Made by a program: the position numbers and the translations under genes
In this document: positions 3,264-58,485 of the stretch, piece by piece
How the letters are laid out: every line of letters starts with the position of its first letter
Position numbering within the stretch: the stretch's first letter is position 1
Notes under the pieces: model-generated
Database searches by the model: none
What the model saw: only the letters and a program-made list of their open reading frames with translations
Told to the model about the DNA's origin: nothing
DNA from: Iphione sp. A-MEVVRFRX5
Lineage: Eukaryota
DNA: 64,000 nucleotides
Direction: 5' to 3'
NCBI GenBank assembly: GCA_976226885.1
Contig: OZ320316.1
Location: forward strand, 24,552,001 to 24,616,000

Positions 3264-3278
3264 GACATGGCGGAGTGA
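3264..3278 (+). promoter_or_regulatory. GACATGGCGGAGT motif (YY1-like) with uORF ATG GCG GAG TGA
   Basis: Identical 13-mer at 52397 upstream of ORF1 of element B; the ATGGCGG core matches the reverse YY1 consensus CCGCCAT. Confidence 0.5.
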
Positions 3279-3574
3279 GGAGGTGACTGCGCGCAGCCTG
3301 TGCGTTTATTGTCGGGTATCGACAGTAGACAAAAGATTTGAAACTAACAATTTGCTTAAATGTGTTAGTTATATTGTCTGATACTGACGAAGGAGTTAGG
3401 AGGCATATCATATTGATTCTGGACGTTTATTTGTGAATTTCTTTTGGACGGGTCGTGCTGGGCGACAATAGGTGAGAAGCGGCTACCGGTGGATCTACCG
3501 CTGAACCAGGTTATACGTGACAACTGTTACCAAGTTGATACCAAGTTCGGGCTGTGCTGTGGTTCAGCTCCACA

Positions 3575-5653
3575 ATGGCTACTAGTGGACACCGACCAGA
3601 CGGAGAACCGGTAAAACAGGACGGAACTCCAAATACAACTGGACCACAAGGAGAAAAACGGAAAGATGTGAGTCCCCTCGACCGAGACCCTAAACAGCAG
3701 GTAACTGAGAATTTGCTTACGGGGATTAATATCTCGTTGAAGGGAGGTGCAGAAGACAGTGGTATCAAACAGGCCTTGGATCGTATATTCCAGGAGCTTC
3801 AAATAAGGGATGAATCCATGAAAGCTAGGGATAAAGAACTACACAGTAAAATGGATTCCATTATACAAATCTGTGACAATAATATAAGTGAATTATCAGA
3901 TTTGATACGTCAAAATACAGATGATATCGAAGAGCTTAGAAAAGATGTCACTACCGCCAACAACCGTATACAGGACCTGGAAAATAAGAATTCCGCCATT
4001 CAGGGACAGATAGCGGGAATTACAGGCGGGGGAAGCAGTTTAACATCGTTGCAAAAGAGATGTGAGATCTTGGATAGGCAATTAAGACGGAAAAATGTCT
4101 ATATCGAAGGATTGGCTGAGAGGCACGGTGAAAATGTAATTCGCTCAGTGATTGACTTATGTAAGTCAATTAAAGTGGATTTGAAGAAAAGTGACATTGA
4201 CTTTGCTTATCGTACTGCTAGGCGTAACCAGGCTGGTATGAGGGGCATATTTGTCAAATTTATGTCTTCAGGTACGAAGGAGGTAGTCATGAATGCTAAA
4301 AGGAGACTACGTGGACAGAACGTTTGGGTGAATAATGACTGGACACCTGTGCAGAGAGAGCAGGCAAAACAGCGAAGACTAGACCGGTTGGCTAGGCCGA
4401 CCACTTGGGCCAATGCTGTCCGGGGGCAGGGAGCTGAGCAAAACCAACCCGGTAATAACAATGCGGACGGGATGATACCCTTGACAAGTGGTACAAACAG
4501 TGTAGCCTTACAACAATCAGATAGGCAGATGGCAAGATCTGATGCTACTGATGGTGATTCTATGGATGTTTCGTCCGATGATGATGATGGGGGGTCAAGT
4601 TCTGACACAGATTCGACTAAGAGTCAAGAATCAGTTGGCCAGAGGCCCTCACTTATGGCACCTATTCCAAAGTTACTGGTTCCAAAGCTACCGATGTCGG
4701 TGGGGGGTCGGAGGAGGGTGGGTCCTGCGCCGGGCAGGGGCAAACCAACTGCTAGAATGGCGGGCGGTAAGTCGCCGGTAGCAGGTACGCCCACCCCTCT
4801 CCCCACCCCTCCCATTACTGGACCTGGTAGCAGGGGTGTGGACCCCATGGTTCACGTGTCCAGACCAGGGCCTGATCCCCAAGTGAAGACCACGAAACCA
4901 GAGAAAACAGACGTGGATTCGAGTCAACCAGTCGTAGGTCCGGCAGCGGCTGTCCCTGGGCAGGGAGTGGCACACAAGCCAACACTGGCTACCTCTAAAG
5001 CATCGATAGTGGTCAACAAACATGGTATCGCTGTGGGTACTAGGAAGTTACCTGATAAAGAAACACCAGTGTCTGTCACTTCCGTAACCACTGGAGTCAC
5101 GGAGTTGTCAAATACAGAAGTTGCTGTGGCCGACACTTCTGCAACCTCGTGCTCACCTACATCGTCCACTGGGTCGCCGGCGGGTAAGCAAAAACTTTTC
5201 TTCCTGGACCCGAAAGGCTCTAGGTTGGCATATGACTATGAGGAGCGTCTGATGTGGCATGGGGCCTATTATATGTCGGCAGCGCATGCCTATTACTACG
5301 AAGCCGCCATGCAGTCGAAGCAGGAGCGATTGGGAGCCAATATAAAGAAAGCGACTAGTACTGCAAAAATAGACAAGTTGAGTGAAAAGCTACCAGTTAT
5401 GCATCACTGGGAGTCCACAAAGCTGTCTGTTTTACGTGTTATTCTGACAGAAAAATTTCAACAGGATAAGCGAGCTAAAAACGATCTATTAGCAACTGAT
5501 GATGACAGGATTGTGATCCTGTCTCAAGATACTTTTTGGGGCTCTGGGGTTTTGCCAGGGGCGTCAAAAAGGGAAAAATACGGGTTCAGTGGCCTGAACC
5601 ATTATGGGTGTTTGTTAAGCGCAATTCGAAATGAATTCCGAGGAAAAACCTGA
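3575..5653 (+). CDS. Element A ORF1p: coiled coil + L1/transposase_22-type RRM + long low-complexity linker + C-terminal NADAR-like domain
   Basis: First ATG at 3575 in good Kozak context (ACAATGG); the track start at 3554 is non-ATG. Heptad region, then LDRQLRRKNVYIEGLAE...RGIFVKF...VWVNNDW. C-terminus WESTKLSVL..EKFQQ..LLATD..DTFWGSG..GLNHYGCLLSAIR matches the YbiA/NADAR pattern. Confidence 0.85.
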   Translation: MATSGHRPDGEPVKQDGTPNTTGPQGEKRKDVSPLDRDPKQQVTENLLTGINISLKGGAEDSGIKQALDRIFQELQIRDESMKARDKELHSKMDSIIQICDNNISELSDLIRQNTDDIEELRKDVTTANNRIQDLENKNSAIQGQIAGITGGGSSLTSLQKRCEILDRQLRRKNVYIEGLAERHGENVIRSVIDLCKSIKVDLKKSDIDFAYRTARRNQAGMRGIFVKFMSSGTKEVVMNAKRRLRGQNVWVNNDWTPVQREQAKQRRLDRLARPTTWANAVRGQGAEQNQPGNNNADGMIPLTSGTNSVALQQSDRQMARSDATDGDSMDVSSDDDDGGSSSDTDSTKSQESVGQRPSLMAPIPKLLVPKLPMSVGGRRRVGPAPGRGKPTARMAGGKSPVAGTPTPLPTPPITGPGSRGVDPMVHVSRPGPDPQVKTTKPEKTDVDSSQPVVGPAAAVPGQGVAHKPTLATSKASIVVNKHGIAVGTRKLPDKETPVSVTSVTTGVTELSNTEVAVADTSATSCSPTSSTGSPAGKQKLFFLDPKGSRLAYDYEERLMWHGAYYMSAAHAYYYEAAMQSKQERLGANIKKATSTAKIDKLSEKLPVMHHWESTKLSVLRVILTEKFQQDKRAKNDLLATDDDRIVILSQDTFWGSGVLPGASKREKYGFSGLNHYGCLLSAIRNEFRGKT

Positions 5654-5772
5654 GAATGTAGTTGTATATGTATTTGAGCGTTTGTTGACTTGTATCAAAA
5701 TGTTGTTTTTTCTTCAACCATAGACTTTTTTCAACTCTCCGTCCTGGAATTCACATTGGTATTATCACGACA

Positions 5773-6492
5773 ATGAACCGGAGGCCTCCATCTTTAAACA
5801 TCCCGCGTGGCTGTCGAGGGTTTCCTGATATTGTGGTGGTGACAGATAGCCATGGCAAGCACCTTGTTGATGATTTTGCAGAGATGATGTTCTATCGCGC
5901 AGCTGTGATGGTAATTCCGGGAGCCGGTCTGGGTTCAGCACTCCAGGTAGGAGTAGAACTATGCAAATATTATAATTTCAGGTACTTGTTTGTCCTCGCT
6001 GGAATAGCGGACATTACAAAACTTTACAAGTTTGCATCAGCTCGAGCTGGGAAACCGTCAGGTATGGTTTGTACCCGGCATCTGACTACTGAGGAAGGTA
6101 AAAATGCCTTACTTGAACTGTTTAAGACAGATGTACCCAGGGCTAGAAGTGAGCTGAATCTGATCGGCACAAAGTTGGTGATATCTTCCATCTTTGGAAT
6201 GTCTTACAGTGATTACAACAAATATAGGTTTGGCTTTCAGGTGCGGCGGAGTAGCAGTATCGTGTTCCAACGAATAATCAATGACTGTGTATTATATCTA
6301 AATTGGTTAATTCGTTGTGTCAATAGCTCCCATGGCCAGTATACAGTACCTATTTATGCAATTGTACATAAGAGAGATAAGGGCCGCTATAGGCATAAAT
6401 ACTGTAGGCTAGAGGATGGTGTGCACTTAAAAAGGAACTATAGCCAAGTGTTATCATGCCAGATATGTCGATACCTGGCTCAACTATACTAG
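5773..6492 (+). CDS. Element A ORF2: stand-alone SGNH/GDSL-type esterase (239 aa)
   Basis: SGNH blocks in the right order: I VVTDSHG, II IPGA, III LAGIAD, V EDGVH. Confidence 0.8.
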   Translation: MNRRPPSLNIPRGCRGFPDIVVVTDSHGKHLVDDFAEMMFYRAAVMVIPGAGLGSALQVGVELCKYYNFRYLFVLAGIADITKLYKFASARAGKPSGMVCTRHLTTEEGKNALLELFKTDVPRARSELNLIGTKLVISSIFGMSYSDYNKYRFGFQVRRSSSIVFQRIINDCVLYLNWLIRCVNSSHGQYTVPIYAIVHKRDKGRYRHKYCRLEDGVHLKRNYSQVLSCQICRYLAQLY

Positions 6493-6672
6493 TATGGCAA
6501 ATTTTTGATGTTACTAGAGGGAGCACAGGCTACCATGTCAGATTGAAATTTTTCTTTTATTTAATTATAATATGTTTTCTATACAGCTATTTAGCAACAT
6601 TGTTTATGTGTTCACCGCATATTTTGACGTTATGTTCATATAAGGCATGTGGGATATAACTAAACTGGATCG

Positions 6673-9469
6673 ATGTTGTTGATTACTTATATCAATGTGC
6701 GTAGCTTATTGAGAAATTGGGATGATTTTGTTTTGTTTATAGAAATGCATAATATTGATGTTTGTTTTGTGGCAGAAACTTGGTTAGATACTTCAGTTAC
6801 AAATGCAGCTTTAACTCTAAAAGGGTATAATTTTACTAGGGTAGATCGTGAAGTAGGAGTAAGATTGAAAGGGGGAGGGATGATGGTATATTACAAAACA
6901 GAAATATCTCATATAATAGACTATAATGATGAGAATTTGATAGCTGATCATGATTTTGAAATATTGCCAATAGTGATTAAGACTAACAATGTACAGATAC
7001 ATTGTATTGGATGTTACAGGCCGCCAAGAGGTAACTTGGATATTGCAATCAATAAGTTACATAAAGCTACGTCAAAGAATAAAATGGTATACTCACATTT
7101 CGTGGTATTGGGTGATTTCAATGTTAATTATAATAGGGTTGAGAGGGATTATGACAAATTGGAGAAGTTTACCCTGAAGAGCGGGGCGGTACAATTAATT
7201 CGGGATGAGACTAGGGTAACTTCTAGATCGAGAACATTGATAGATTTGATTTTTACAAACATTAGTCATAAACTAGAAGACGTCCGCTGTGTTGATGCCT
7301 CCTTTTCTGACCATAGAGCCATAATGTGTATGATTGTTAATAAACAAGGCGATCTAAGACATGATTACGTCCATATCCGAAAGCGGGATATTGCCCACAT
7401 TGAAGATTTTTACAGTAGAGCGAAGGAGGGGATCAATGCCTTGAATAATAAGCCTAGGGATCTCCAGAGTAAATGGACAGCGATTAAATCATGTCTGCTG
7501 ATTTTATATGACATTTACAATCCAAAGAAAAGACTACGATTTAGAGGAGGAAGAAAATGTTGGATGTCGGAAGAACTCTTAGAAATAATTAGGGAGAGGA
7601 ATAGACTGTACAGAATAGCTAGATGCAGAGGGGGTCTGGAATAGTGATTGGCTTATAAGGTCAAAAGGAAGTCCGTGAATAAGCAGATTAGATTAGCCAA
7701 GAAAAAGTATATTAGCAAACTATTAAAGGAAAAGGAAGGGGACCCTGCTAAGTATTGGTATACTTTAAAAACCAACCTTGGACTAGGAAATGAGAGTAAA
7801 GTAGATATTACATTATCTATTGATGGGGAATTGATAAGGGGGGACAAGGTTCCGGATAAATTAAATGGATTTTTTCTAAATGTGGGTTCCAGTGTTCTGC
7901 AAACTCTAGGCGTGCACCCAGTAGAGAACATAGGTATGGATAGGGTGAGAGTCGTTATGCAAGAAAATTTTGCGGCTAACAAGGAGCAGGTGATTAGACT
8001 AATCAAATTACTGCAGGAAACGAAACCTTCAGGGATGGGGGACTTGCGAGTTAACCATGTAAAAAATATCATGCTTAATTCTATAGATGTGTTTGTTGAC
8101 ATGTTTAATCAAAGCTTTAGGCAAAGTGAAATACCCTGGGAGTGGAAGTTAGCTAGGGTGTGTCCCTTATGGAAAGGAGGTAATAGAAAAGACACGGGTA
8201 ACTATAGACCCATAAGTGTCCTGAGCATTGTCTCTAAAGTTGTAGAAAAAATAGTTCATAAGCATATCTTCCACTATTTAAATGAGCACAGGTTATTAAC
8301 CCCAAGCCAGTTTGGCTTTAGGCCGGGGTGCTCCACAGAGTCGGCAATTATAGCTTTAACAGACAAAATTCATGAAGGTTTGAATAATAATATGAGGGTG
8401 TTGGGACTATTTATCGATTTTAAAAAAGCTTTCGACTCTGTGGATCACTCCGTGCTGTTGTACAAGCTGGAGATGACTGGCATTGTTAGACGAAATTTAG
8501 AATGGATTAAGGAATACTTGCGACATAGAAGGCAATACGTGTCATGTAATGGGAGTAGGTCAGAAATGGGTGATATAACATGTGGTGTCCCCCAGGGGTC
8601 GATACTTGGTCCCCTCCTTTTTCTTATTTTTATGAATGATCTCCCAAAGGTCATGGTGGGATATGATTGTTATATGTACGCGGATGATGTGGCTCTAATA
8701 ATTATGGGAAGGGATGATAATGATTTGAGAGAACATGTCCAAAATGTGGGTAAAAAGTTTATGCTATGGGCTAAATCGTCTAGGATTATGGTAAATATGA
8801 AAAAAAACTAAGGGGGTATATTTTTCATATCGTAGGAGGACGGCAAGACCCCTGGGGGATCAAGTAAAGTTTGGAGATGGACTAATTGATATGGTTGACA
8901 ACTTTGAATACCTTGGCGTAGTATTGGATAGTACTTTGACAATGACAGCTGCTTGTAAGAAGATATCTCATAAAGTCATGGGTAGATTAACGTACTATAG
9001 GAAAATTAGGTATTTACTTGACATGGAAACTGCTATCAGGGTGGCACGTACTATGATCCTCCCAATTGTTGACTATGCTAGTGTTATCCATACAAATGTA
9101 AAATCTAAACCATTCATGAAGTTAATGAGTATACGTAAGACAGTGATTAACTTAGCATTTGGGTTTAAGAGATATACCAAAGCAGAAATAACGGCAGACT
9201 TTTTGATGAGAAGGGATCAGAAACTGCTTCGTGTTTGTTACAATGAAGTGGAACCGATACACAGAGTAAGAGTCACTAGAGATGGCCTGAGGAGGAAGCT
9301 TCGAGTATCAAAACCAAACAAGGAGATGTTCAAAAGGTCTATAAGATATGCAATGAAGCAATTGTGGGAAAAATTACCTCTGAATATTACCATGTTAGCA
9401 TTGAAGGATTATATAAACAGGGTTAGAACCCTGGGGCAAGTGTATGCCCTTTCTTATAAGGTACAGTAG
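6673..9469 (+). pseudogene. Element A ORF3: APE endonuclease + reverse transcriptase, disrupted (TAG TGA at 7642-7647; +1 frameshift in A8 run 8800-8807)
   Basis: APE motifs NVRSL, ETWL, YRPP, LGDFN, IDLIF, SDH. RT motifs YRPISVL, QFGFRPG, FIDFKKAFDSVDH, GVPQGSILGP, YADD, FEYLG. Removing one A restores NMKKTKG and gives about 931 codons. Confidence 0.93.
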
Positions 9470-9608
9470 AGTAAGAGTATAGTGTGTATCCCCTGTAGGA
9501 TGGATTTGTGATATCTCTGCTGTTATCTTATTCTGTTCTATCAGCAAATCTTCTACAGTGAAAAATGAAAGTAAAGAAGTATCTGTTTGTTCACAAAATA
9601 TTATGACT

Positions 9609-9720
9609 TGATCTGGGGTAAAGCCGCGATCAAAAAAATTTCCATGATCTGGGGTAAAGCCACGATCAAAACTACCATTGAATCTTCCAAAATGGCCGTA
9701 TGGGGCTAAGCCGCTACGCC
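9609..9720 (+). other. Three related RNA stem-loops in the 3' UTR of element A
   Basis: TGATC-TGG-GGT-AAA-GCC-GC-GATCA (from 9609), TGATC-TGG-GGT-AAA-GCC-AC-GATCA (from 9645), CGTA-TGG-GGC-TAA-GCC-GC-TACG (from 9697). Confidence 0.7.
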
Positions 9721-12051
9721 GAAAAGTAAGACTTGTAACGTATACGTATTGTGAGGCATGCCATGTCATCAACATTAAAATCTTAAATATATTTTTGCAT
9801 ACCATCCCATCTCATCCAAAAAATCTATTGTTTGAAATATTGGTTTCTGGATGTACATACAGTTATGTATAAATTTCCAGCGAAAATAAAGATTTAAAAA
9901 AAAAAAAAGTTCCAGGGCTGATGATATTAGGTCTGTGGTCTAAACATATACACAACAGTTGTTGTTATTTACGTGTGAGATATAACAGCGTTGATACGTG
10001 TCTTTATAACGTATAAAGTTGGGATGCGGTCATCAGCTTTCTGCCCTACCCTGCAGTAATCCCTTGTTAATTGGCAACCCTCCAAGAATCTACATTTAAG
10101 ATGCACTCTGTGTTTTTCCATGGGGTAACAGTTTCTCTGCAATTTGATCTATCCACACGCAGGCCATCCAAGGCCTATCGTACAGAAGCTGCCCTATGCC
10201 AGGAGCCACTTAAGAGGATTTTATTCAAATAATTTATTGACAGAATATCATCTTAGTGGAATCGAAGGCCCCTTCTTTCAGGCCAGGCAGCAAGTCGGGC
10301 GGCACTGACAATCAGGGAACTGAAGCATAATTTTCTATCAATGTATTAATGCATAGCCATTCGATATTCCCTGGGGAGCCATATGTACTTTCATGGCAAA
10401 GCCACAATCTATATGACAACCAGGTCTGAATTCCTAACACAATAAGTGAACTTGAATTCATTCTTCCCTGAGGGCATACTTGTCTTTCAATGCGATTAGT
10501 TCCTTGGCTTTTTGTCCAGGATAAAGTTTGTACAGAGACGGCAGGACGTCTAGTAAATACAAAAAAAACACCAACATACACAGGAAAATGAAGACAGATT
10601 GAAGACGTGCAGTGGGTGTGAAAAGACAGAGTCACACCCGAGTGTGTTGGGGGCTTGGCTCACGTTCCCGCGGTCTGCGCTGTGGATGGCCGAGGGGGGA
10701 CACTCCCTCGAATAGTTGAAATTTAAACCGATAGGCGGCGTGGCCTGGAGAAACCGTTGGGAAATTGTGAATTTCCAGCCTCGAGCGACAAACAATCTCC
10801 CCGTCCACTGTTTTCTCTCTTTCAACTTTTATTCATGTTCTCTGGTTGTGTTGCTTTTTTCCTAGACAGTTACACCCTGAAGTAGAACAAGAGTTACTAT
10901 CATGTAGAGGTATACACGTGACTGTGTCCCATATGTACAGACCTTCCTGTCCTTCTTGTCTGTTTTTTACTCTGCCATCCTAAATATATTTTTCATGAGG
11001 TGGATAAATTCAGTTTTATTTTGGCCTAAAGCTGGTGTTATGTGCGACTCTATTTCTGTACTGCCTATCTATTTATCTATCTACCTATCTGTCTGTTTAT
11101 CTATCTGTCTGTCTATCAGTTAGATGGCAAACTTATTCAAAAAGAAATAATATTCTCCAATCAAATGGAAGTCATATGACCTTTCTCAACCAATCAGTGT
11201 AGAGCAGGTGGCCACATCAGTAACATTTGTCGCCATTTGATTTGCATGAAGAAACATTCTCAGTTATTGGTGATTGTACATTTAATTGACTTTATTTTCC
11301 ATTAGAAACCATCAAATCTTTTACCGATGAAGGCTGCCACTGGCGTATTTAATATCTCTGTGTGGAAAGGTAGAAATAGACATCAGCCTGTCAGATGAAT
11401 ATCGCCTGGAAGCAGCCATAACTTGTTCTCAGGATCAAGCAGGTGTTTATCCTTGTTAATCTGCTATTTGTGAGGTTTCCTCACAAGGACACCAATTTAG
11501 TGGTTTACAAAGTACCAAGTGTAAGTTATAACATGGTTTTAGTGCTGAACATCCAAAATCTTTCAAGATAAAATTTCCTTTCGCTTTATGAAAAGCTTCC
11601 GTTTCGTAAATACAAATATTTCAAAGTTAAACATTTCTCTGCCGGTGACCACTTTTGCATATAGGATGCATGATAATTATTAAAATGTCATTATACTTGG
11701 AATAACTGGTACTGATAGGCGCTACATTCATATAACTACTAATTATTCCATTAAGGAATAGACACGATAATGTTATATATTTGTGTTCCACTGCAGCATC
11801 CTGCATGTACTTTTTACTTGATGTGTCCCAGTTGGATGGCAAGATGGGAGAGTACTGCAAGAATCGCCATGTCAGTCATGCTGTCAGGAAAATAAGATTG
11901 CTGGTCACTGCTAAATAATTCCACTGCAGTAGGTCAAATATTGTCTAACATCCTTCATTGAGTGGTCTGGTACAACGACGCTGGAGACGGACGAGTCGGA
12001 GGATGGCTATAAGATATACAACAGGGGACCATTCACGTTGACCGAATGATC

Positions 12052-51662: not shown

Positions 51663-52396
51663 TTGACGCGGGGAGCCATTGCTTGTGCTCACGTCAAAGG
51701 GTCAAGTGTAGCGGCGATGCTAATGGCTTTTGGCATGGGTCGCGCCAAGTCATGACCGTAGGGACATGACAACCAGCGCCACCTAGGTCGTGCTCCCCCA
51801 GCTGCCGGTAGGGGGCGGGGCGCGACTCGGAGCCTCCCAGTGGTGTCTTCGGTGAAATGTTGAAAGGAGTTGTTGATGCTCTGGTGGTTCGGGTGGGGGA
51901 GGGTGGTTGTGAGAGGGACGCTGATGGTGAGGATGATGGTGAACGAGAGCGTAGGGGATGCAGACAATCAGTGAAAAAATCTACCTCGAAAGGGAATGAA
52001 TGATAGCTATGGTTTGTCATAACAGAGCTACAAAAGCGTTTTCTGAGTGGAGGCCGATGGGATTCGTGGACCAAGTTGCTGAAGTGATATAAGTGCGTAT
52101 AATCAAATATTGGTCTTTCAAACATGAAATAAATTAGTAGAGGTTCTTCTAGAGTGCATGTAGTACAAAACATAAAAATATACTACTTAATCCTCGGACT
52201 TTAATTTAAGGTGATAGAGGTCTTACAGAAAATGTTTAATTTTTTTAACAGATGCAAATACTCATATTGAAGGCGATCGACCAAATACGCCACTTACATG
52301 AATAATACAGGATGGGATTTGCTTCAGTAGAAACATATATGTATATAGATATATATACATATGAAAAATATTCATGTACAGATCAGCCAGGAACAC

Positions 52397-52411
52397 GACA
52401 TGGCGGAGTAG
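52397..52411 (+). promoter_or_regulatory. GACATGGCGGAGT motif (YY1-like) with uORF ATG GCG GAG TAG
   Basis: Identical 13-mer at 3264 in element A. Confidence 0.5.
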
Positions 52412-52502
52412 AGACGTGTTTTGAGTGGGCTCCGACTTGACCAGTCCAGAATAAGCAAAGATACCAGGGGAAGTATACAGAAGGCCCCAAGTAAGTCAGG
52501 GA

Positions 52503-54176
52503 ATGCTCACGAGATCCAGAAGCACAACAGAGACAGAGGTCTACTGCAATATGCCGACATCAAATCCAGGGAAGAAAGGTGGAAAGCCATGACCGGCTAC
52601 CCCGAGCGATGATAGAGGAACGAACGGTCATAACGGTCAGCAGGTGGGCGATCTGGCTGTCACGGTCTCGAAGGGCAGTGACAGCAGGGTGGACCCGCCA
52701 ACACACGAGGTGACCGCCGGAGCAGGTCTGTCCATGTTCGATGTGGACAATGACGAAGGGGAAGGAGGCATCTACCCCCTACCACAAAAGGCTGAACCTG
52801 TAAACGGAGCAGATGAAGGTGATCTGTTTCTGGACACACCAGGACATGGTGAGGACTATAGCCTAATAGACTTAGGTGTAACAGGGAACGATCCTATCAA
52901 TTTGACACCTGTTGGAGGTGGAGGGAGTCCCACTAGCTCTGCCGCATTGTTCTTAGTATTAAACGATCTAAGGCAGGAGATAGATGACATTCGACCGAGG
53001 TTAACAAAAATCAGTAAGCTAGAGTCAATGGTTACTGAATTAAAATCAGAAGTAGCAACTATCACAGAGAAGTATGAGAAATCTTGTGAAAAAATCAATC
53101 AGCTAGAATCAACAATGGCAGCGAAGGTGAAAGCAGACAAAGAAAAAATATTGGGGGACGTGGACATAGCGTTCAGGCAGTATAACATCAGACTTGAATT
53201 GATGGAGGGAGAAAAATGTAAACTGAAGGATCGCATACTGCAGCTTGAGGTAGACCTTAGAAAAGCAAACTTTATTATCGAAGGAGTCCCAGAGGGTTGG
53301 GCAGAGGATACATGGGCGATTGTAAATGATCTACTCTCTAGGATCGATCAGGATTGTTACTATTCTGATGCGCTACTATCAGCCGTCAGAATCGGTGGTA
53401 TGAGAGGCCGTCCCAGACCGATTTTAGTAAAAATGGTGGGAGACGACATCAGGAATAGTGTGTTTTCAAAAAAACCAAATCTAAATTGGATACAAGGGGG
53501 TGGTTATATCTCGTTTCGGGAGGATCTACCTGAGGAGGCAAGGACTCCTAACAAGTCGCTAAAAGCAATCAGTAACTTGGCTGTAAGCAAGGGCATGAAA
53601 TCTACAGTGAATGGCACAGTTATCAGGATAGAGGGCACAGAGTACAACTTCAATGAGTTACATAAGCTGCCTGAGGGCTTGTCAATCGAAGAAACAGCTA
53701 GAAGACGGGTAGGGAATTCCTTTATTTTTAGCGGACCGAACTGCATACTGTCCAATGAGGCACCAGTTAATATAGAGCTAGGCGGAGACAGGTACAAAAC
53801 GGTCAACCATTGGGTAGCAGCGGAATGCGCGCGACTACATGGTCGTGACGAAATCCGTCGACAGATTCTAACAGAATCAGATGGGAACAGGGTACTACCC
53901 CTAACATATCAAATCAAGAAATCGAGCGATTGGTTACACATGCAGGAGGAGATATTGAAGGAGGGTCTCTATGCAAAGCTGAAAGTAAGTGACAAGTTCA
54001 AAAGAGAGTTAATATCAACAGGGGCACAGCAATTAGTCGAAGCAGGCCGTGACTATATTTATGGCTCAGGCTGCCACTTATGGGACGCAAAAATCAAGAA
54101 TGGACTGTGGGCAGGTCGTAATCTTGCTGGCATTACTTTGCAAAAAATTCGTGCCAGTCTCTCCGATTCTAACTAA
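52503..54176 (+). CDS. Element B ORF1p: acidic/disordered N-terminus + coiled coil + L1-type RRM/CTD + C-terminal NADAR-like domain; one in-frame TGA at 52590-52592
   Basis: The frame of the 52644 track ORF extends upstream to ATG 52503 (MLTRSRS...) across a single TGA; next ATG is 52734. Motifs LRKANFIIEGVPE, RPRPILVKM, FREDL. C-terminus FSG..ILSN..YKTVNHW..ELISTG..LVEAGRDYIYGSG..WAGRNLAG..LQKIR. Confidence 0.82.
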
Positions 54177-54619
54177 CGATCTATTCTTGTTGCAGGAATT
54201 GAATTGGTATAAAATATTGATTCGTTGATCATTATTCGTTTCTCCGGCGTTCACAGGGAAAAAGGTAGTGTGCTGGACATATCACTTGGTTGCTGTCACG
54301 GGACAATATCAATATGCTCATAATTATCTAAGTAATATAAATTTCTTCGTCACATATTGTATCAGACTATAGATCAATTTATTAGCCCTTGCATAATGAT
54401 AACTGAACCGCTTGTACTCATAACATCCCTGCGTCGCTACAATCAGCCCAGGGACATGAATAACGTGAGATCGATTTCAATTACACTAATGGAACATTGC
54501 TTTGCTTGCCTAATAATGCTTTCCAACTGGAATTTAACGTGTACATTCCTGCATATTGCCAGACTCTTATTATCCAACTTGTCTGAATACATGATTTCAG
54601 GAGATATTGAGGACTCGAA

Positions 54620-55252
54620 ATGCGACAAGTTCTACTGCTGAGTGACTCGAGAGGTCGATGCATAGCGTCCTCCATGGGTGACACGTGGGAGGCTGATAAT
54701 GAAGTCTCCCTTGTTGTGAAATCGTTCCCGGGTGCCAGGCTGGGTTTTCTCTTGAGCATCTTGCGTGAAACTGATCTAAGTGACTACAGAATGGTTTACA
54801 TATTCGCCGGCATAGCAGATTTAACTAAAAAAATTAAGGGGGCAAATATCTTGCTCCCTAGGTATGACAGCATGGTGGAATTTAGATTATGGTTAGATGC
54901 TCTATCATCGTTGCTCAGCCGTAGAGTATGTGAATATCATCCTTACATACCGATAGGATTGGTACCAATAAGTGGCATAAATCTGGCTCAATACAGTCCC
55001 ACAACCTACTCAAAAGATTTTCAGAAAATGCTAAACAATATGATCATGGAATTGAACATCTTTTACAGACAATTCAATTCGCACTACAACCTGTACACAC
55101 CAGCTACTGAATTCCCTGTGCACCGGAGGATCAAGGGTAAATATCGAACTCGTTTTACATACCTATACGACGGCTGCCATGCGGGCAACAAGGCAACTGC
55201 CAGTTGGGTCCGCAACATCAAAGCAGCTATACTCGTCATGCTGCGTGACTAA
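54620..55252 (+). CDS. Element B ORF2: stand-alone SGNH/GDSL-type esterase (210 aa)
   Basis: Blocks I LLSDSRG, II FPGA, III FAGIAD, V YDGCH. Confidence 0.82.
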   Translation: MRQVLLLSDSRGRCIASSMGDTWEADNEVSLVVKSFPGARLGFLLSILRETDLSDYRMVYIFAGIADLTKKIKGANILLPRYDSMVEFRLWLDALSSLLSRRVCEYHPYIPIGLVPISGINLAQYSPTTYSKDFQKMLNNMIMELNIFYRQFNSHYNLYTPATEFPVHRRIKGKYRTRFTYLYDGCHAGNKATASWVRNIKAAILVMLRD

Positions 55253-55405
55253 TAGAAAACGGTATGTTGTGCTTTTTTCTGGTCAGGTCAAGTCGGGACA
55301 CAATCTTGCTCATATTCTCTCTGCACATACTTATCCTGAGTGGATTACGAGTGACAAACTCATTGTACATAACCTTAACCCTCCTGGGGGGGCTGTCACC
55401 TTTCC

Positions 55406-58195
55406 ATGACAATACTTACTATATCAGCTTGGAATGTGCATAGCATACTAGGGAAATTAAGCCATGTGCAAAGTCTGTTATACAGTCACAACGTGGATAT
55501 ACTTGTGATAGTCGAGACATGGCTGAACGGTGGAATACCAAACTCAGTATTAGAAATAACAGGGTACAGACTAATCCGACAAGACCGCTGCCCAGTGGCA
55601 ACAGGATTACGTGTTGGCGGGGGCGTTCTGGTATATGCAAGAAACAATTTCGAAGTAGATGTACTAGAGGAACTGTCGTCTGTAGATCATATTGGCCACA
55701 TCTTATCATTAAAAATCAAACCTGGGAATAGAAAAAAGCAATACTTTACGGTAATATATAGAAGACCCAACAGTAGTTTAGACGCTTACCTTGAGAAATT
55801 GGGGGTGGTTCTGACCGAAATAGTTAAATACGACGATAGGGTCGTTACAGTCTTGGGGGATATGAATGTTAACTGGATAAAAAATTCCGTCGAGAAGAAC
55901 AAATGTCTGTCTTTCTCGAAGAGATTGAAGATTCCACAGCTAATTACCACCTCTACCTATCGTGCCGGGTCTTGCCTAGATCACATATATACGAATCATA
56001 AGTATATCATGGAAGGAGGAGTCTGGGGGGACGCTGCTAGCGACCACAATCCTGTATTTGTAAAAATTAAAAAGGGCAGGGGAAAGACACCATTGTCGAC
56101 ATCAAGAGTGAGAAATTATAGGAGGTATAACTATGGGCGATTCTCTCAGGAGTTATCCGAACAAAACTGGGAGCTGGCTGCTGATGCAAATGGAGAATCG
56201 GGATGGGAGAAGATAATTGAGAATGGTTTAAGAGTCTTAGATGACATAGCACCATATGAAGAGAGGAAAGTGTTTACCTCCAAGCCATTTTGGCTAAGCC
56301 CAAAAATAATGGACTTGAAACGGGAACGGGATTACTACTTTAAAAAGCACAAGCGGTTTCATGACGAGGACAGCCTACGGATATACCAGTACTATAGGAC
56401 AAGGGTGAATAAGGAATTATTTCATGCTAAGAAGAGAAGGGTGAATGAAGAAATATCTAGGGCTGCAGGGGACTCAAGGCAGCTATGGGGGACCATAACA
56501 AAACAGGTATTTGGGAGGGTTAATTGCAGACACGATATTATACTGAAGCAGGACGGGGCTTCTCGTGGAGTTGAGGATTCCGCAGAACTACTAAACAATT
56601 TTTTCATAGACTCTGTGGAGGAAGTAGCTGCACAAATGGACAACGTGACTATACCGAATCTCGAAGACGCTGACGACGGATTAAATGACTTTAGTGAAGT
56701 TGACAATCGTACAGTACTGAGACATGTGAAAAAGTTACAAGAAAATAAACCCACTGGGATGGACGGAATAAACATGAGGGTCCTCAAACACCTACTACAA
56801 ATTAAGGTTGATCTATTCACGTGGGTTATAAATGATTGTTTAAATAAAGGAATATTTCTGACAGCATGGAAAAATGCAACTGTAGTGCCCATACACAAGA
56901 AAGACAGTCGTTTAGAGTGTAAAAATTATCGACCAGTATCACTCCTACCTGTCCCGGGGAAGATTCTTGAGAGAATAGTATTAGATCAGGTAAACTCTTC
57001 AGCAGAAAGTAGGCACATTATGATGGACTCACAATATGGCTTCCGAGCGGGAAGGGGCTGCAGCCTAGCTTGTGCAGATCTATTGCAACATGTGTATGAG
57101 GACATTAATAATTCCAGATACCCTGGGGCTGTATATTTGGACCTAAGCAAGGCCTTTGATCTTGTCTCTCACGAACTAATTGTTAGGAAATTAGCAAATT
57201 ACGGGTATACGGGGAGAGTAAACCATTGGTTCAAAAGCTATCTAGCGGGCAGGAAGCAGAAGGTAGTTTGTAACGGAGTAGCATCGACGATAAGACAGGT
57301 AAACACGGGGGTTTCCCAAGGCTCAATATTGGGCCCATGGCTATTCACAATGCTAGTAAACGACCTAAACACTGTCAGCTTTCCCTCACGGTTAGTGGTC
57401 TACGCAGACGACATAATTTACGCATGGGGAGGGAGCGCCTGGGCATTGAATCTTAAACTTCAACACACACTAAGACAAATATCTGTCTGGTGTAATATAA
57501 ATGGGATGAAACTAAACCTTACGAAATCTAAGTACATGTGCTTTGGTAAAACGAGCCAATATGATTTGGATCTGGAAATAGCGGGAACTAGGTTGGGGAG
57601 GGTTAGGACCTTCAACTACCTAGGGTATTGGATTGACGAACAACTAACCTTTAGGCATCTGATAGAGGACAAGGTGAGGAAACTAAGAACAAAAAGTTAC
57701 ATTCTAGGAAGGGCAAAAAGGCTTTTTAATGCTGATACAATGCGTTTGGCGTATAATGGGTTCGTTACATCCACCTTAAATCATGGCCTGGAGTTTGTAT
57801 CTGGTGCCTCAAAGGTATCGTTGGAAAAACTACATGGGGCCTATTTAACATCAATAAAACAATGCTTCATGAGTGAATTTACTTCTAAGAGGAGACTAAT
57901 GGGCTGGATGGTAGATCATGGGATGATAGATCTAGAGGACCGTATAGAATACTTCTTAATGCTCCTCATGCATGACATGTCAAACTTGAAATTTTTCAGA
58001 CGACTGCCGATGAGAGGTACCAGGGCATCACAAAGAGAAGACCTACTAACGAATAAGCCAACCAGTGAGCTATATCGTAGAGGGTTTCTGTATAAAGGTA
58101 TGATTAAGTGGAACAAAATACCCTTGGCCCATAGAAGTTTAAATAAAGGCAAGTTCAAGGGAGTTCTAAAGAATAAGTCAGGTCGCAAAAACTAA
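55406..58195 (+). CDS. Element B ORF3: intact APE endonuclease + reverse transcriptase (929 aa)
   Basis: APE motifs WNVHS, ETWL, GGGV, YRRP, LGDMN, LDHIY, SDH. RT motifs NYRPVSLL, QYGFR, YLDLSKAFD, GVSQGSILGP, YADD, FNYLG. No stops or frameshifts. Confidence 0.96.
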   Translation: MTILTISAWNVHSILGKLSHVQSLLYSHNVDILVIVETWLNGGIPNSVLEITGYRLIRQDRCPVATGLRVGGGVLVYARNNFEVDVLEELSSVDHIGHILSLKIKPGNRKKQYFTVIYRRPNSSLDAYLEKLGVVLTEIVKYDDRVVTVLGDMNVNWIKNSVEKNKCLSFSKRLKIPQLITTSTYRAGSCLDHIYTNHKYIMEGGVWGDAASDHNPVFVKIKKGRGKTPLSTSRVRNYRRYNYGRFSQELSEQNWELAADANGESGWEKIIENGLRVLDDIAPYEERKVFTSKPFWLSPKIMDLKRERDYYFKKHKRFHDEDSLRIYQYYRTRVNKELFHAKKRRVNEEISRAAGDSRQLWGTITKQVFGRVNCRHDIILKQDGASRGVEDSAELLNNFFIDSVEEVAAQMDNVTIPNLEDADDGLNDFSEVDNRTVLRHVKKLQENKPTGMDGINMRVLKHLLQIKVDLFTWVINDCLNKGIFLTAWKNATVVPIHKKDSRLECKNYRPVSLLPVPGKILERIVLDQVNSSAESRHIMMDSQYGFRAGRGCSLACADLLQHVYEDINNSRYPGAVYLDLSKAFDLVSHELIVRKLANYGYTGRVNHWFKSYLAGRKQKVVCNGVASTIRQVNTGVSQGSILGPWLFTMLVNDLNTVSFPSRLVVYADDIIYAWGGSAWALNLKLQHTLRQISVWCNINGMKLNLTKSKYMCFGKTSQYDLDLEIAGTRLGRVRTFNYLGYWIDEQLTFRHLIEDKVRKLRTKSYILGRAKRLFNADTMRLAYNGFVTSTLNHGLEFVSGASKVSLEKLHGAYLTSIKQCFMSEFTSKRRLMGWMVDHGMIDLEDRIEYFLMLLMHDMSNLKFFRRLPMRGTRASQREDLLTNKPTSELYRRGFLYKGMIKWNKIPLAHRSLNKGKFKGVLKNKSGRKN

Positions 58196-58423
58196 AAATA
58201 AACTGTATGTTAGTAGACTAGGCCGAACTGTACATATTTCCTCAGCCACTGATCCCTAGTGATGATCTCAATAAAGCTAGCGACCCACGATGGAAGCGAT
58301 TGGCCTTGGATCCCTACCCTGAGGACAGCAACTGATACCAGTCACTGTACAAGAAGCAAGCGACAAACGTGTTGGAGACAGGATGGAAAACAATCTTTCC
58401 CTCACTGAGCTCTTATTGGAAAC

Positions 58424-58485
58424 CACTTAGCTTAAGTGACAATTTGCTCAATAAACAATTCTCAATTCTCAATTCTCAATTCTCA
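58424..58485 (+). terminator. 3' terminus of element B: hairpin CACTTA-GCT-TAAGTG (58424-58438), AATAAA (58450-58455), (CAATTCT)4 tail (58456-58485)
   Basis: Directly visible; a stem-loop plus a short tandem-repeat tail is the typical CR1/L2 3' end. Confidence 0.85.

Follow-up and report, generated by a model that had tools for sequence, protein, structure and literature searches.

Element B is a retrotransposon at positions 52397-58485 (+) of a 64,000-nucleotide stretch of contig OZ320316.1 (assembly GCA_976226885.1, positions 24,552,001 to 24,616,000) of Iphione sp. A-MEVVRFRX5. This whole stretch is called the window below, and coordinates refer to it unless another locus is named. We found that B carries three long open reading frames (ORFs) on the + strand, and in our judgement it is likely to be a full-length, probably young and autonomous three-cistron long interspersed nuclear element (LINE) of a CR1-like, esterase-bearing clade, with a noncanonical NADAR domain on its ORF1. 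LINE ORF1 proteins (ORF1p) are usually viewed as plain RNA chaperones, and the clade described here joins an L1-type ORF1p to two enzyme folds.

Architecture of element B and its three ORFs

The initial annotation of this DNA had given B a coiled coil-RRM-CTD-NADAR ORF1, an SGNH hydrolase as ORF2 and an intact apurinic/apyrimidinic endonuclease-reverse transcriptase (APE-RT) as ORF3, followed by a hairpin, AATAAA and a (CAATTCT)4 tail. The sizes of the ORFs, the spacers of 443 and 153 nt, the AATAAA signal and the tail were all recovered as described, and the three domain assignments were borne out by structure prediction, fold comparison and motif searches.

ORF1 (52734..54176, +) encodes 480 amino acids (aa) from its first ATG, and its frame is open back to 52644, so that the long frame (52644-54176) has 510 aa counted from GTG. 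An AlphaFold model built from a six-sequence alignment had a mean predicted local distance difference test score (pLDDT) of 75, with 80-94 in the folded parts and less than 50 in residues 1-67 of the 480-aa form. The disordered beginning is followed by a single long helix of about 107 residues, a predicted coiled coil (52941..53261, +; residues 70-176 of the 480-aa form, pLDDT ~75-88) with weak matches to coiled-coil families of Pfam. Behind the helix, the model contains a beta-alpha-beta RNA recognition motif (RRM; residues 179-263), a small alpha/beta domain (residues 267-321) and a helical domain (residues 323-479). The part made up of the RRM and the C-terminal domain (CTD) lies at 53268..53696 (+) and is of the L1 ORF1p type: in the PDB, Foldseek matched ORF1 to the human LINE-1 ORF1p trimer (2YKO/2YKP/2YKQ; for 2YKO, E 1.1e-7 and TM(target) 0.64), to 2LDY and to the central domain 2W7A, and then to generic RRMs. 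Based on AlphaFold and Foldseek, ORF1 of B has the coiled coil, RRM and CTD that define an L1-type (type II) ORF1p, although Pfam Transposase_22 was not detected in it at E 0.1 or better. The long helix and the RRM and CTD folds behind it match human L1 ORF1p (2YKO); in contrast to that protein, ORF1 of B carries NADAR as an extra domain at its C-terminus, and the element around it is not an L1.

The NADAR (YbiA-like) domain is fused to the end of ORF1 (53700..54170, +). It was recognized by Pfam PF08719 over residues 368-506 of the long frame (E 1.2e-19; 71.6 bits against a cut-off of 35.1), and Foldseek matched it to the Phytophthora nicotianae NADAR protein 8BAU (E 5.3e-9, TM(target) 0.70) and to Escherichia coli YbiA 2B3W (TM 0.69). 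A word-indexed protein search returned one match for the whole of ORF1 and none for the NADAR part. A 2A-like peptide at the N-terminus of ORF1 was considered and rejected, as the sequence reads SNPGK and NPGP is absent. Upstream of ORF1, a 13-codon ORF at window 52551-52592 lies in frame with it and ends at TGA. In a related LINE, ORF1 ends in a Baculo_FP_2nd domain (L028:801-1646, E 8.6e-6), and the same family occurs among the Atlas neighbours of the ORF1 of B.

ORF2 (54620..55252, +) is a 210-aa SGNH/GDSL hydrolase with Ser10, Gly38, Asp184 and His187, and with Ala66 at the block III position. Alone, it gave no Pfam match, and phmmer against the PDB returned nothing meaningful; the assignment of the fold required an alignment of 55 sequences. 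With these 55 sequences aligned, the AlphaFold model reached a pLDDT of 94.9 and a predicted template modelling score (pTM) of 0.91. Among the 50 Foldseek matches listed for it (E down to 1e-7, TM 0.50-0.68), nearly all were of GDSL/SGNH type (4HF7, 4IYJ, 2HSJ and sialate O-acetylesterases), the remaining ones being engineered scaffolds and one entry titled alpha/beta hydrolase. In agreement with this, 24 of the 55 family members individually matched Pfam Lipase_GDSL, and the family profile matched 3P94 and 4IYJ and, weakly, 4C1B (an ORF1-encoded protein, E 0.017), which we take to be the ZfL2-1 esterase. The block I Ser, the block II Gly and the block V Asp-x-x-His of the SGNH fold are all found in ORF2, and Ser10, Gly38, Asp184 and His187 are kept in 54-55 of the 55 sequences. 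The block III position is more variable, with Cys in 29 sequences, Asn in 21 and Ala in two, one of which is B. Modelled in this way, ORF2 is predicted to be an SGNH esterase whose catalytic triad is under selection and whose oxyanion position is unusual. It consists of the esterase fold only and forms a separate ORF 443 nt after a complete ORF1, unlike the type IV (esterase) ORF1p of CR1/L2 LINEs, where the esterase is one domain of the first ORF and is linked to a coiled coil or zinc finger.

ORF3 (55406..58195, +) is uninterrupted over 929 aa and contains the APE at ~55430-56047 and the RT at ~56891-57634 (Pfam Exo_endo_phos, residues 9-214; RVT_1, residues 496-743). The motifs WNV9, VETW36, GDMN151, LDH191 and SDH212 and the RT motif YADD666 are all present, and N10, E37, D152, N154, D192, D213, H214 and YADD666 are invariant among the aligned relatives. 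APE catalytic residues and a Y/FxDD RT are thereby found in one ORF, as in APE-type LINEs. Human L1 ORF2p was matched by ORF3 in the RT core only (E 1e-12), whereas the APE of an L1/Tx1-like metagenomic element, L001, matched its residues 9-401 (E 5e-27). Therefore, B is not an L1/Tx1 element. Its RT relatives carry either PHD ORF1s (L008, L009 and the P0012 element) or esterase ORF1s. It was in CR1-like elements that these two types of ORF1, PHD and esterase, were initially described.

The window is eukaryotic DNA of about 43% GC, rich in microsatellites, with a run of 140 N at 797-936 (a gap or masked sequence). GC content rises from ~0.31 upstream of B to 0.44-0.63 in the putative 5' untranslated region (UTR) and internal promoter region (52397..52733, +), which contains five ATGs. 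The step, to ~0.5 near 52380-52400, is the only mark of a 5' end at 52397, and the boundary is approximate. ORF1 and ORF2 are separated by a spacer of 443 nt (54177..54619, +) with a GC of 0.37 and six ATGs, and ORF2 and ORF3 by one of 153 nt (55253..55405, +). A readthrough fusion of ORF2 and ORF3, which share a frame, was also considered and rejected: simple readthrough is unlikely because the 153-nt spacer contains six in-frame stops (counted by eye). The 3' UTR (58196..58455, +; 260 nt) ends with AATAAA at 58450-58455. The hairpin of the initial annotation exists as a stem-loop of 6 bp at 58424-58438, but it is weak (dG -4.2 kcal/mol, z -1.2), and the 3' UTR taken in full shows no unusual structure relative to shuffled sequences (z +0.75). 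The element closes with the microsatellite (CAATTCT)4.3 (58456..58485, +; Tandem Repeats Finder, period 7, 100% matches), at which target-primed reverse transcription presumably starts.

All 4857 coding nt of B are open, while 4.8% of the possible substitutions there would make stops. If the element decayed neutrally, the 95% bound on its divergence is ~1.3% for substitutions alone, and ~0.4% if indels occur at one-eighth of the substitution rate; this indel rate is an assumption and the whole age bound is rough. The open coding sequence and the perfect tail support a young insertion, as had been proposed for B from its long ORFs, and the proposal is plausible within this range of divergence.

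The catalytic site of the NADAR domain

In the C7 NADAR of E. coli, E88 and K95 (E43 and K50 in P. nicotianae) are needed for guanine-ADP-ribose hydrolysis and for toxin rescue (Schuller et al., PMC11543638). Over the NADAR superfamily, no residues are better conserved than this Glu and Lys; the site also comprises a third acidic residue, which is E125 in the YbiA family (PMC11543638). The register of the LINE domains was taken from three agreeing alignments: a pairwise phmmer alignment of B with YbiA, a MAFFT alignment of seven NADARs from LINEs, and a profile of the latter against 8BAU and 2B3W. We found that the catalytic Glu and Lys are both replaced in B, where the E43 position holds Asn388 (codon 53805-53807, +) and the K50 position holds Cys395 (53826-53828, +). 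The last-strand Glu of the YbiA subfamily is retained as Glu466 (54039-54041, +), which stands in LVEAG; the counterparts of this stretch are LYEAS in 8BAU and LVEH in YbiA. Element A, the other element of this kind in the window, has Ala, Ala and Ile at the E43, K50 and E125 positions. All three residues (Glu, Lys and Glu) are present in L003 and L005, whose NADAR ORFs lie directly 5' of the two closest ORF2 relatives. Glu and Lys are likewise found in L001/P0001, with His at the E125 position, and in L006, with a frameshift there, and L025 has Glu, Asn and Glu.

To become Glu and Lys codons, the codons of B, AAC and TGC, would need two and three changes. Considering these multiple changes together with the open ORF and the strong domain score, we read the loss of the residues as a state of the lineage and not as recent decay. 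The B domain has the fold of the NADAR/YbiA hydrolases (2B3W, 8BAU and the DarT1-associated proteins) and, like them, the YbiA-type Glu of the last strand; it differs from them in being fused to a LINE ORF1 and in having Asn and Cys as the equivalents of Glu43 and Lys50. From these alignments, a canonical ADP-ribosyl-base hydrolase activity is unlikely for this domain. The initial annotation had recommended B as the best template for functional tests, and for NADAR catalysis it is a poor one because the catalytic Glu and Lys are replaced by N388 and C395. On the other hand, the comparison of NADARs that keep Glu and Lys (L003, L005) with those that have lost them (A, B) provides a testable contrast for a role of de-ADP-ribosylation in retrotransposition.

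Relatives of element B and the modular 5' region

B had been described as a second, divergent element that independently replicates the three-ORF plan of element A (~3264-9908), and our results agree with this. Element A encodes a 699-aa ORF1 with NADAR (E 7.7e-17) and a 239-aa ORF2. The ORF2s of A and B are homologous (27% identity, E 8e-15), their APE-RTs are 27-29% identical, and their ORF1s align confidently only in the RRM (33% identity, E 4e-5); the distance between the two elements is as great as that from either to any database relative. Unrelated RT clades combined with non-homologous ORF2s had been named as an outcome that would speak against this view; we found homologous ORF2s and a single RT clade. 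The APE-RT of element A is broken by two adjacent in-frame stops at 7642-7647 and by a frame change after 8811 (8811-8891), ahead of its C-terminal part. The 3' end of A (window 9880-9907) consists of AATAAA and a run of 13 A, and that of B is (CAATTCT)n; two types of 3' end are thus found in one RT clade.

The best RT matches of B were just 23-29% identical to it. Three RT trees were built, namely a quick tree of 67 rows, a careful tree of 40 rows, and a quick tree to which newly found loci were added. A, B and P0005 fell in one RT clade both in the 67-row tree (Shimodaira-Hasegawa-like approximate likelihood ratio test, SH-aLRT, 95) and in the 40-row tree (ultrafast bootstrap 92, SH-aLRT 97), and the tree with new loci gave SH-aLRT 100 for a clade of 29 rows holding all three. 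This clade contains every esterase-bearing element, and the PHD-type elements fall outside it. Inside the clade, branching was poorly resolved and B sat on a long branch; the three elements with both NADAR and esterase grouped in 70% of the bootstrap trees of the 40-row analysis.

The 5' regions of these relatives were diverse. The same order of NADAR-ORF1, esterase ORF and APE-RT is seen in L006 (P0005). In L003, the stop of the NADAR ORF1 and the start of the esterase ORF overlap by 4 nt (L003:1299-1302), which suggests coupled termination-reinitiation, unlike the 443-nt, ATG-rich spacer of B. In contrast, a NADAR ORF1 occurs without an esterase ORF in the P0025 element, where a 498-aa ORF1 is followed by the RT ORF after 280 nt, and in L025. 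Esterase ORFs stand just 5' of the RT in L018, L071 and the P0018 element, whose contigs end too soon on the upstream side to rule out another ORF1, and the 499-aa ORF1 of L055 weakly matches the esterase profile of the ORF2 family (E 9e-4, with no Pfam GDSL match). In other members, the esterase is joined to different modules. The 646-aa ORF1 of L016 (L016:413-2350, +; RCNA010001092.1) combines DnaJ (E 1.7e-15), a GDSL esterase and a CCHC zinc knuckle, the last of these being a weak match under the Pfam cut-off (E 0.003). The ORF1 of L040 (L040:45-1676, +; metagenome contig Ga0307993_1002659), whose RT groups near A and B, combines an AlkB-like 2OG-FeII_Oxy_2 domain (E 2e-18) with a GDSL esterase. 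As read from this domain match, LINE ORF1s carry two kinds of eraser of base modifications in nucleic acids, NADAR and the AlkB-like domain. The ORF1 of L010 ends in a CCCH finger. Two sister NADAR-type elements, on the P0025 contig (genes 7685-8308 and 8665-9570) and at L011:3561-5462, each have a downstream ORF with faint C2H2 zinc-finger matches; this C2H2-like ORF 3' of the RT may belong to the element as a fourth ORF or be a gene next to it.

The initial annotation had also named family members without ORF2 or NADAR as evidence against it, and at the level of the clade such members were found: no separate esterase ORF is present in the P0025 element and L025, and no NADAR in L016, L040 and L010. 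Rather than a fixed trait, the three-ORF layout is therefore one state of a modular 5' region. The distribution of NADAR-ORF1 is patchy, with at least three places in the clade plus the L1/Tx1-like L001. It is most likely, as far as these trees and domain matches go, that the esterase is old in the CR1-like clade and that the ORF1 with NADAR is mobile, as a module acquired or exchanged on several occasions. Most simply, the three-ORF plan would be that of an esterase-type element which gained, or retained, an upstream NADAR-ORF1. Reticulate evolution of ORF1 has been described for the Jockey superfamily (PMC4120745), and the patchy NADAR-ORF1 fits this pattern.

Alternative explanations, mechanism and known systems

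Several points weigh against the reading of B as a complete and autonomous CR1-like LINE. The CR1-like class is indirect, as it was read from the PHD and esterase ORF1s of relatives and from the non-L1 APE. Ala66 of ORF2 replaces the block III Asn of the oxyanion site, and we infer the loss of NADAR activity from an alignment at ~20% identity. Simple reinitiation on ORF2 is unlikely because of the six ATGs in the 443-nt spacer. No convincing target site duplication was found at the flanks of B, which have a lone 8-mer in common (~0.4 expected by chance), nor was a further copy or fragment of B found in the 64-kb window, which lends no support to the abundance of the lineage in this genome that the initial annotation had suggested; the ends, youth and mobility ascribed to B are accordingly putative. 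Moreover, a eukaryotic ORF1 needs an ATG start, and the long frame of ORF1 is without ATG until codon 31 (ATG at 52734). An upstream in-frame ATG at 52551 is cut off after 13 codons by a single TGA at 52590, which is either the native end of an upstream ORF (uORF) or one nonsense change in a longer disordered N-terminus, and this copy may carry one disabling change at the start of ORF1.

The last point leads to the explanation that B is no longer autonomous but a very recently dead copy, in which the TGA at 52590 destroyed the start of ORF1 and the intactness of ORF2 and ORF3 merely reflects youth. The order of in-frame ATG, TGA and 30 open codons ahead of the first ATG of the long ORF speaks for it, as do the five ATGs within the 5' UTR. 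However, short upstream ORFs could equally be genuine uORFs, and the 480-aa product from the ATG at 52734 keeps every folded domain: the part that would be lost is disordered in the model (residues 1-67), so the folded domains are kept under either start. We consider the dead copy unlikely. A lower probability still is given to an active B NADAR, which would hydrolyse ADP-ribosyl-bases as a counter-defence against host ADP-ribosylation of LINE RNA or cDNA. Guanine ADP-ribosylation is indeed reversed by NADARs (PMC11543638, PMC11125620), the Pfam and fold matches of the B domain are strong, E466 is retained, and relatives L003 and L005 keep all three residues. Nevertheless, the Glu and Lys positions are Asn and Cys in B, all three residues are lost in element A, and mutation of these two residues kills activity or toxin rescue in the E. 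coli C7 NADAR (PMC11543638); an active hydrolase is thus quite improbable. The explanation with the least credit is that the layout is a composite, formed when an esterase gene or an element fragment was inserted into a two-ORF LINE at this locus. The AT-rich 443-nt spacer (GC 0.37) differs from the ORFs in composition, and related elements with a two-ORF architecture exist. But the gene order recurs in A, in L006 and, for ORF1 followed by ORF2, in L003 and L005 (the L loci being from other samples). In addition, an exhaustive HMMER search with ORF2, taken to E 1e-3, yielded a family of 127 representative clusters, most of whose proteins stand alone and measure 200-230 aa. Because an identical gene order occurs in independent samples, the composite was rejected as hardly credible.

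Under the preferred reading of B as an autonomous three-cistron LINE, transcription would start from the GC-richer 5' UTR, and ORF1p would trimerise via its helix and coat the RNA in the manner of L1 ORF1p. The NADAR domain would most likely act as a binding or structural module, or carry out a different chemistry, and would not be a guanine-ADP-ribose hydrolase. By analogy with ZfL2-1, the esterase of ORF2p would probably tie the ribonucleoprotein to lipids or membranes; the ORF1p esterase of ZfL2-1 is active and binds acidic phospholipids (PMC3905857). The APE of ORF3p would nick the target, and the RT would then copy the RNA from the (CAATTCT)n tail.

Esterase ORF1s are established in CR1, L2 and RTEX elements (Kapitonov and Jurka 2003; PMC3905857; PMC4120745). 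B resembles ZfL2-1 (PMC3905857; PMC4120745) in its APE-RT, in a microsatellite tail without poly(A), and in an esterase with the SGNH triad encoded 5' of the RT. However, the ZfL2-1 esterase is a domain of a single ORF1p behind a dimeric coiled coil, whereas that of B is a separate 210-aa ORF, has no coiled coil and comes after an entire L1-type ORF1. At the block III Asn, furthermore, B has Ala and its family Cys or Asn, and the match of the family profile to 4C1B is weak. The only record of NADAR in a LINE ORF1 that our literature search found is a passing remark on Tx1 families of Crassostrea gigas (Repbase; PMC12477816), and B shares the RRM, the CTD and a YbiA-type NADAR with this ORF1 and with that of the metagenomic L001. 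The ORF1s of B and L001 (P0001) are 24% identical over 77% of the length (E 3.7e-12). Yet L001 has an L1-like APE, no esterase match on its locus and both the catalytic Glu and Lys, while B belongs to a different RT group, has an extra esterase ORF and lacks Glu and Lys.

Capture of accessory enzymes is known from other retroelements: a GDSL esterase ORF3 in the long terminal repeat (LTR) elements Vesta of bdelloid rotifers and in Athena (PMC5408684), NADAR in the Pol of an Ectocarpus Gypsy element (PMC12477816), and AlkB in orchid Ty3/Gypsy elements (PMC9289625). These share with the clade of B a modular capture of the same types of accessory enzyme, although B is of a different class, the modules occupy a different position, and two accessory folds are combined in one LINE. 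In our literature search, AlkB capture was found only in the orchid Ty3/Gypsy elements, and we came across no paper on an L1-type ORF1-NADAR together with an esterase ORF of its own, or on NADARs that have lost their catalytic residues. Considering the NADAR of B and the AlkB-like oxygenase of the related L040, lophotrochozoan LINEs might carry base-modification erasers on their packaging protein against host enzymes that mark the RNA or cDNA of retroelements, and in lineages such as those of A and B the NADAR might now be a catalytically dead reader or shield of ADP-ribosylated nucleic acid; we regard this idea as a doubtful one. The swaps of modules among the relatives (AlkB-like oxygenase, DnaJ, CCCH/CCHC fingers and PHD) form a natural series on the accessory activities that LINEs need. 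Moreover, the esterase triad is strictly conserved across the aligned family, from which we argue that selection maintains a lipid or ester chemistry in these elements.

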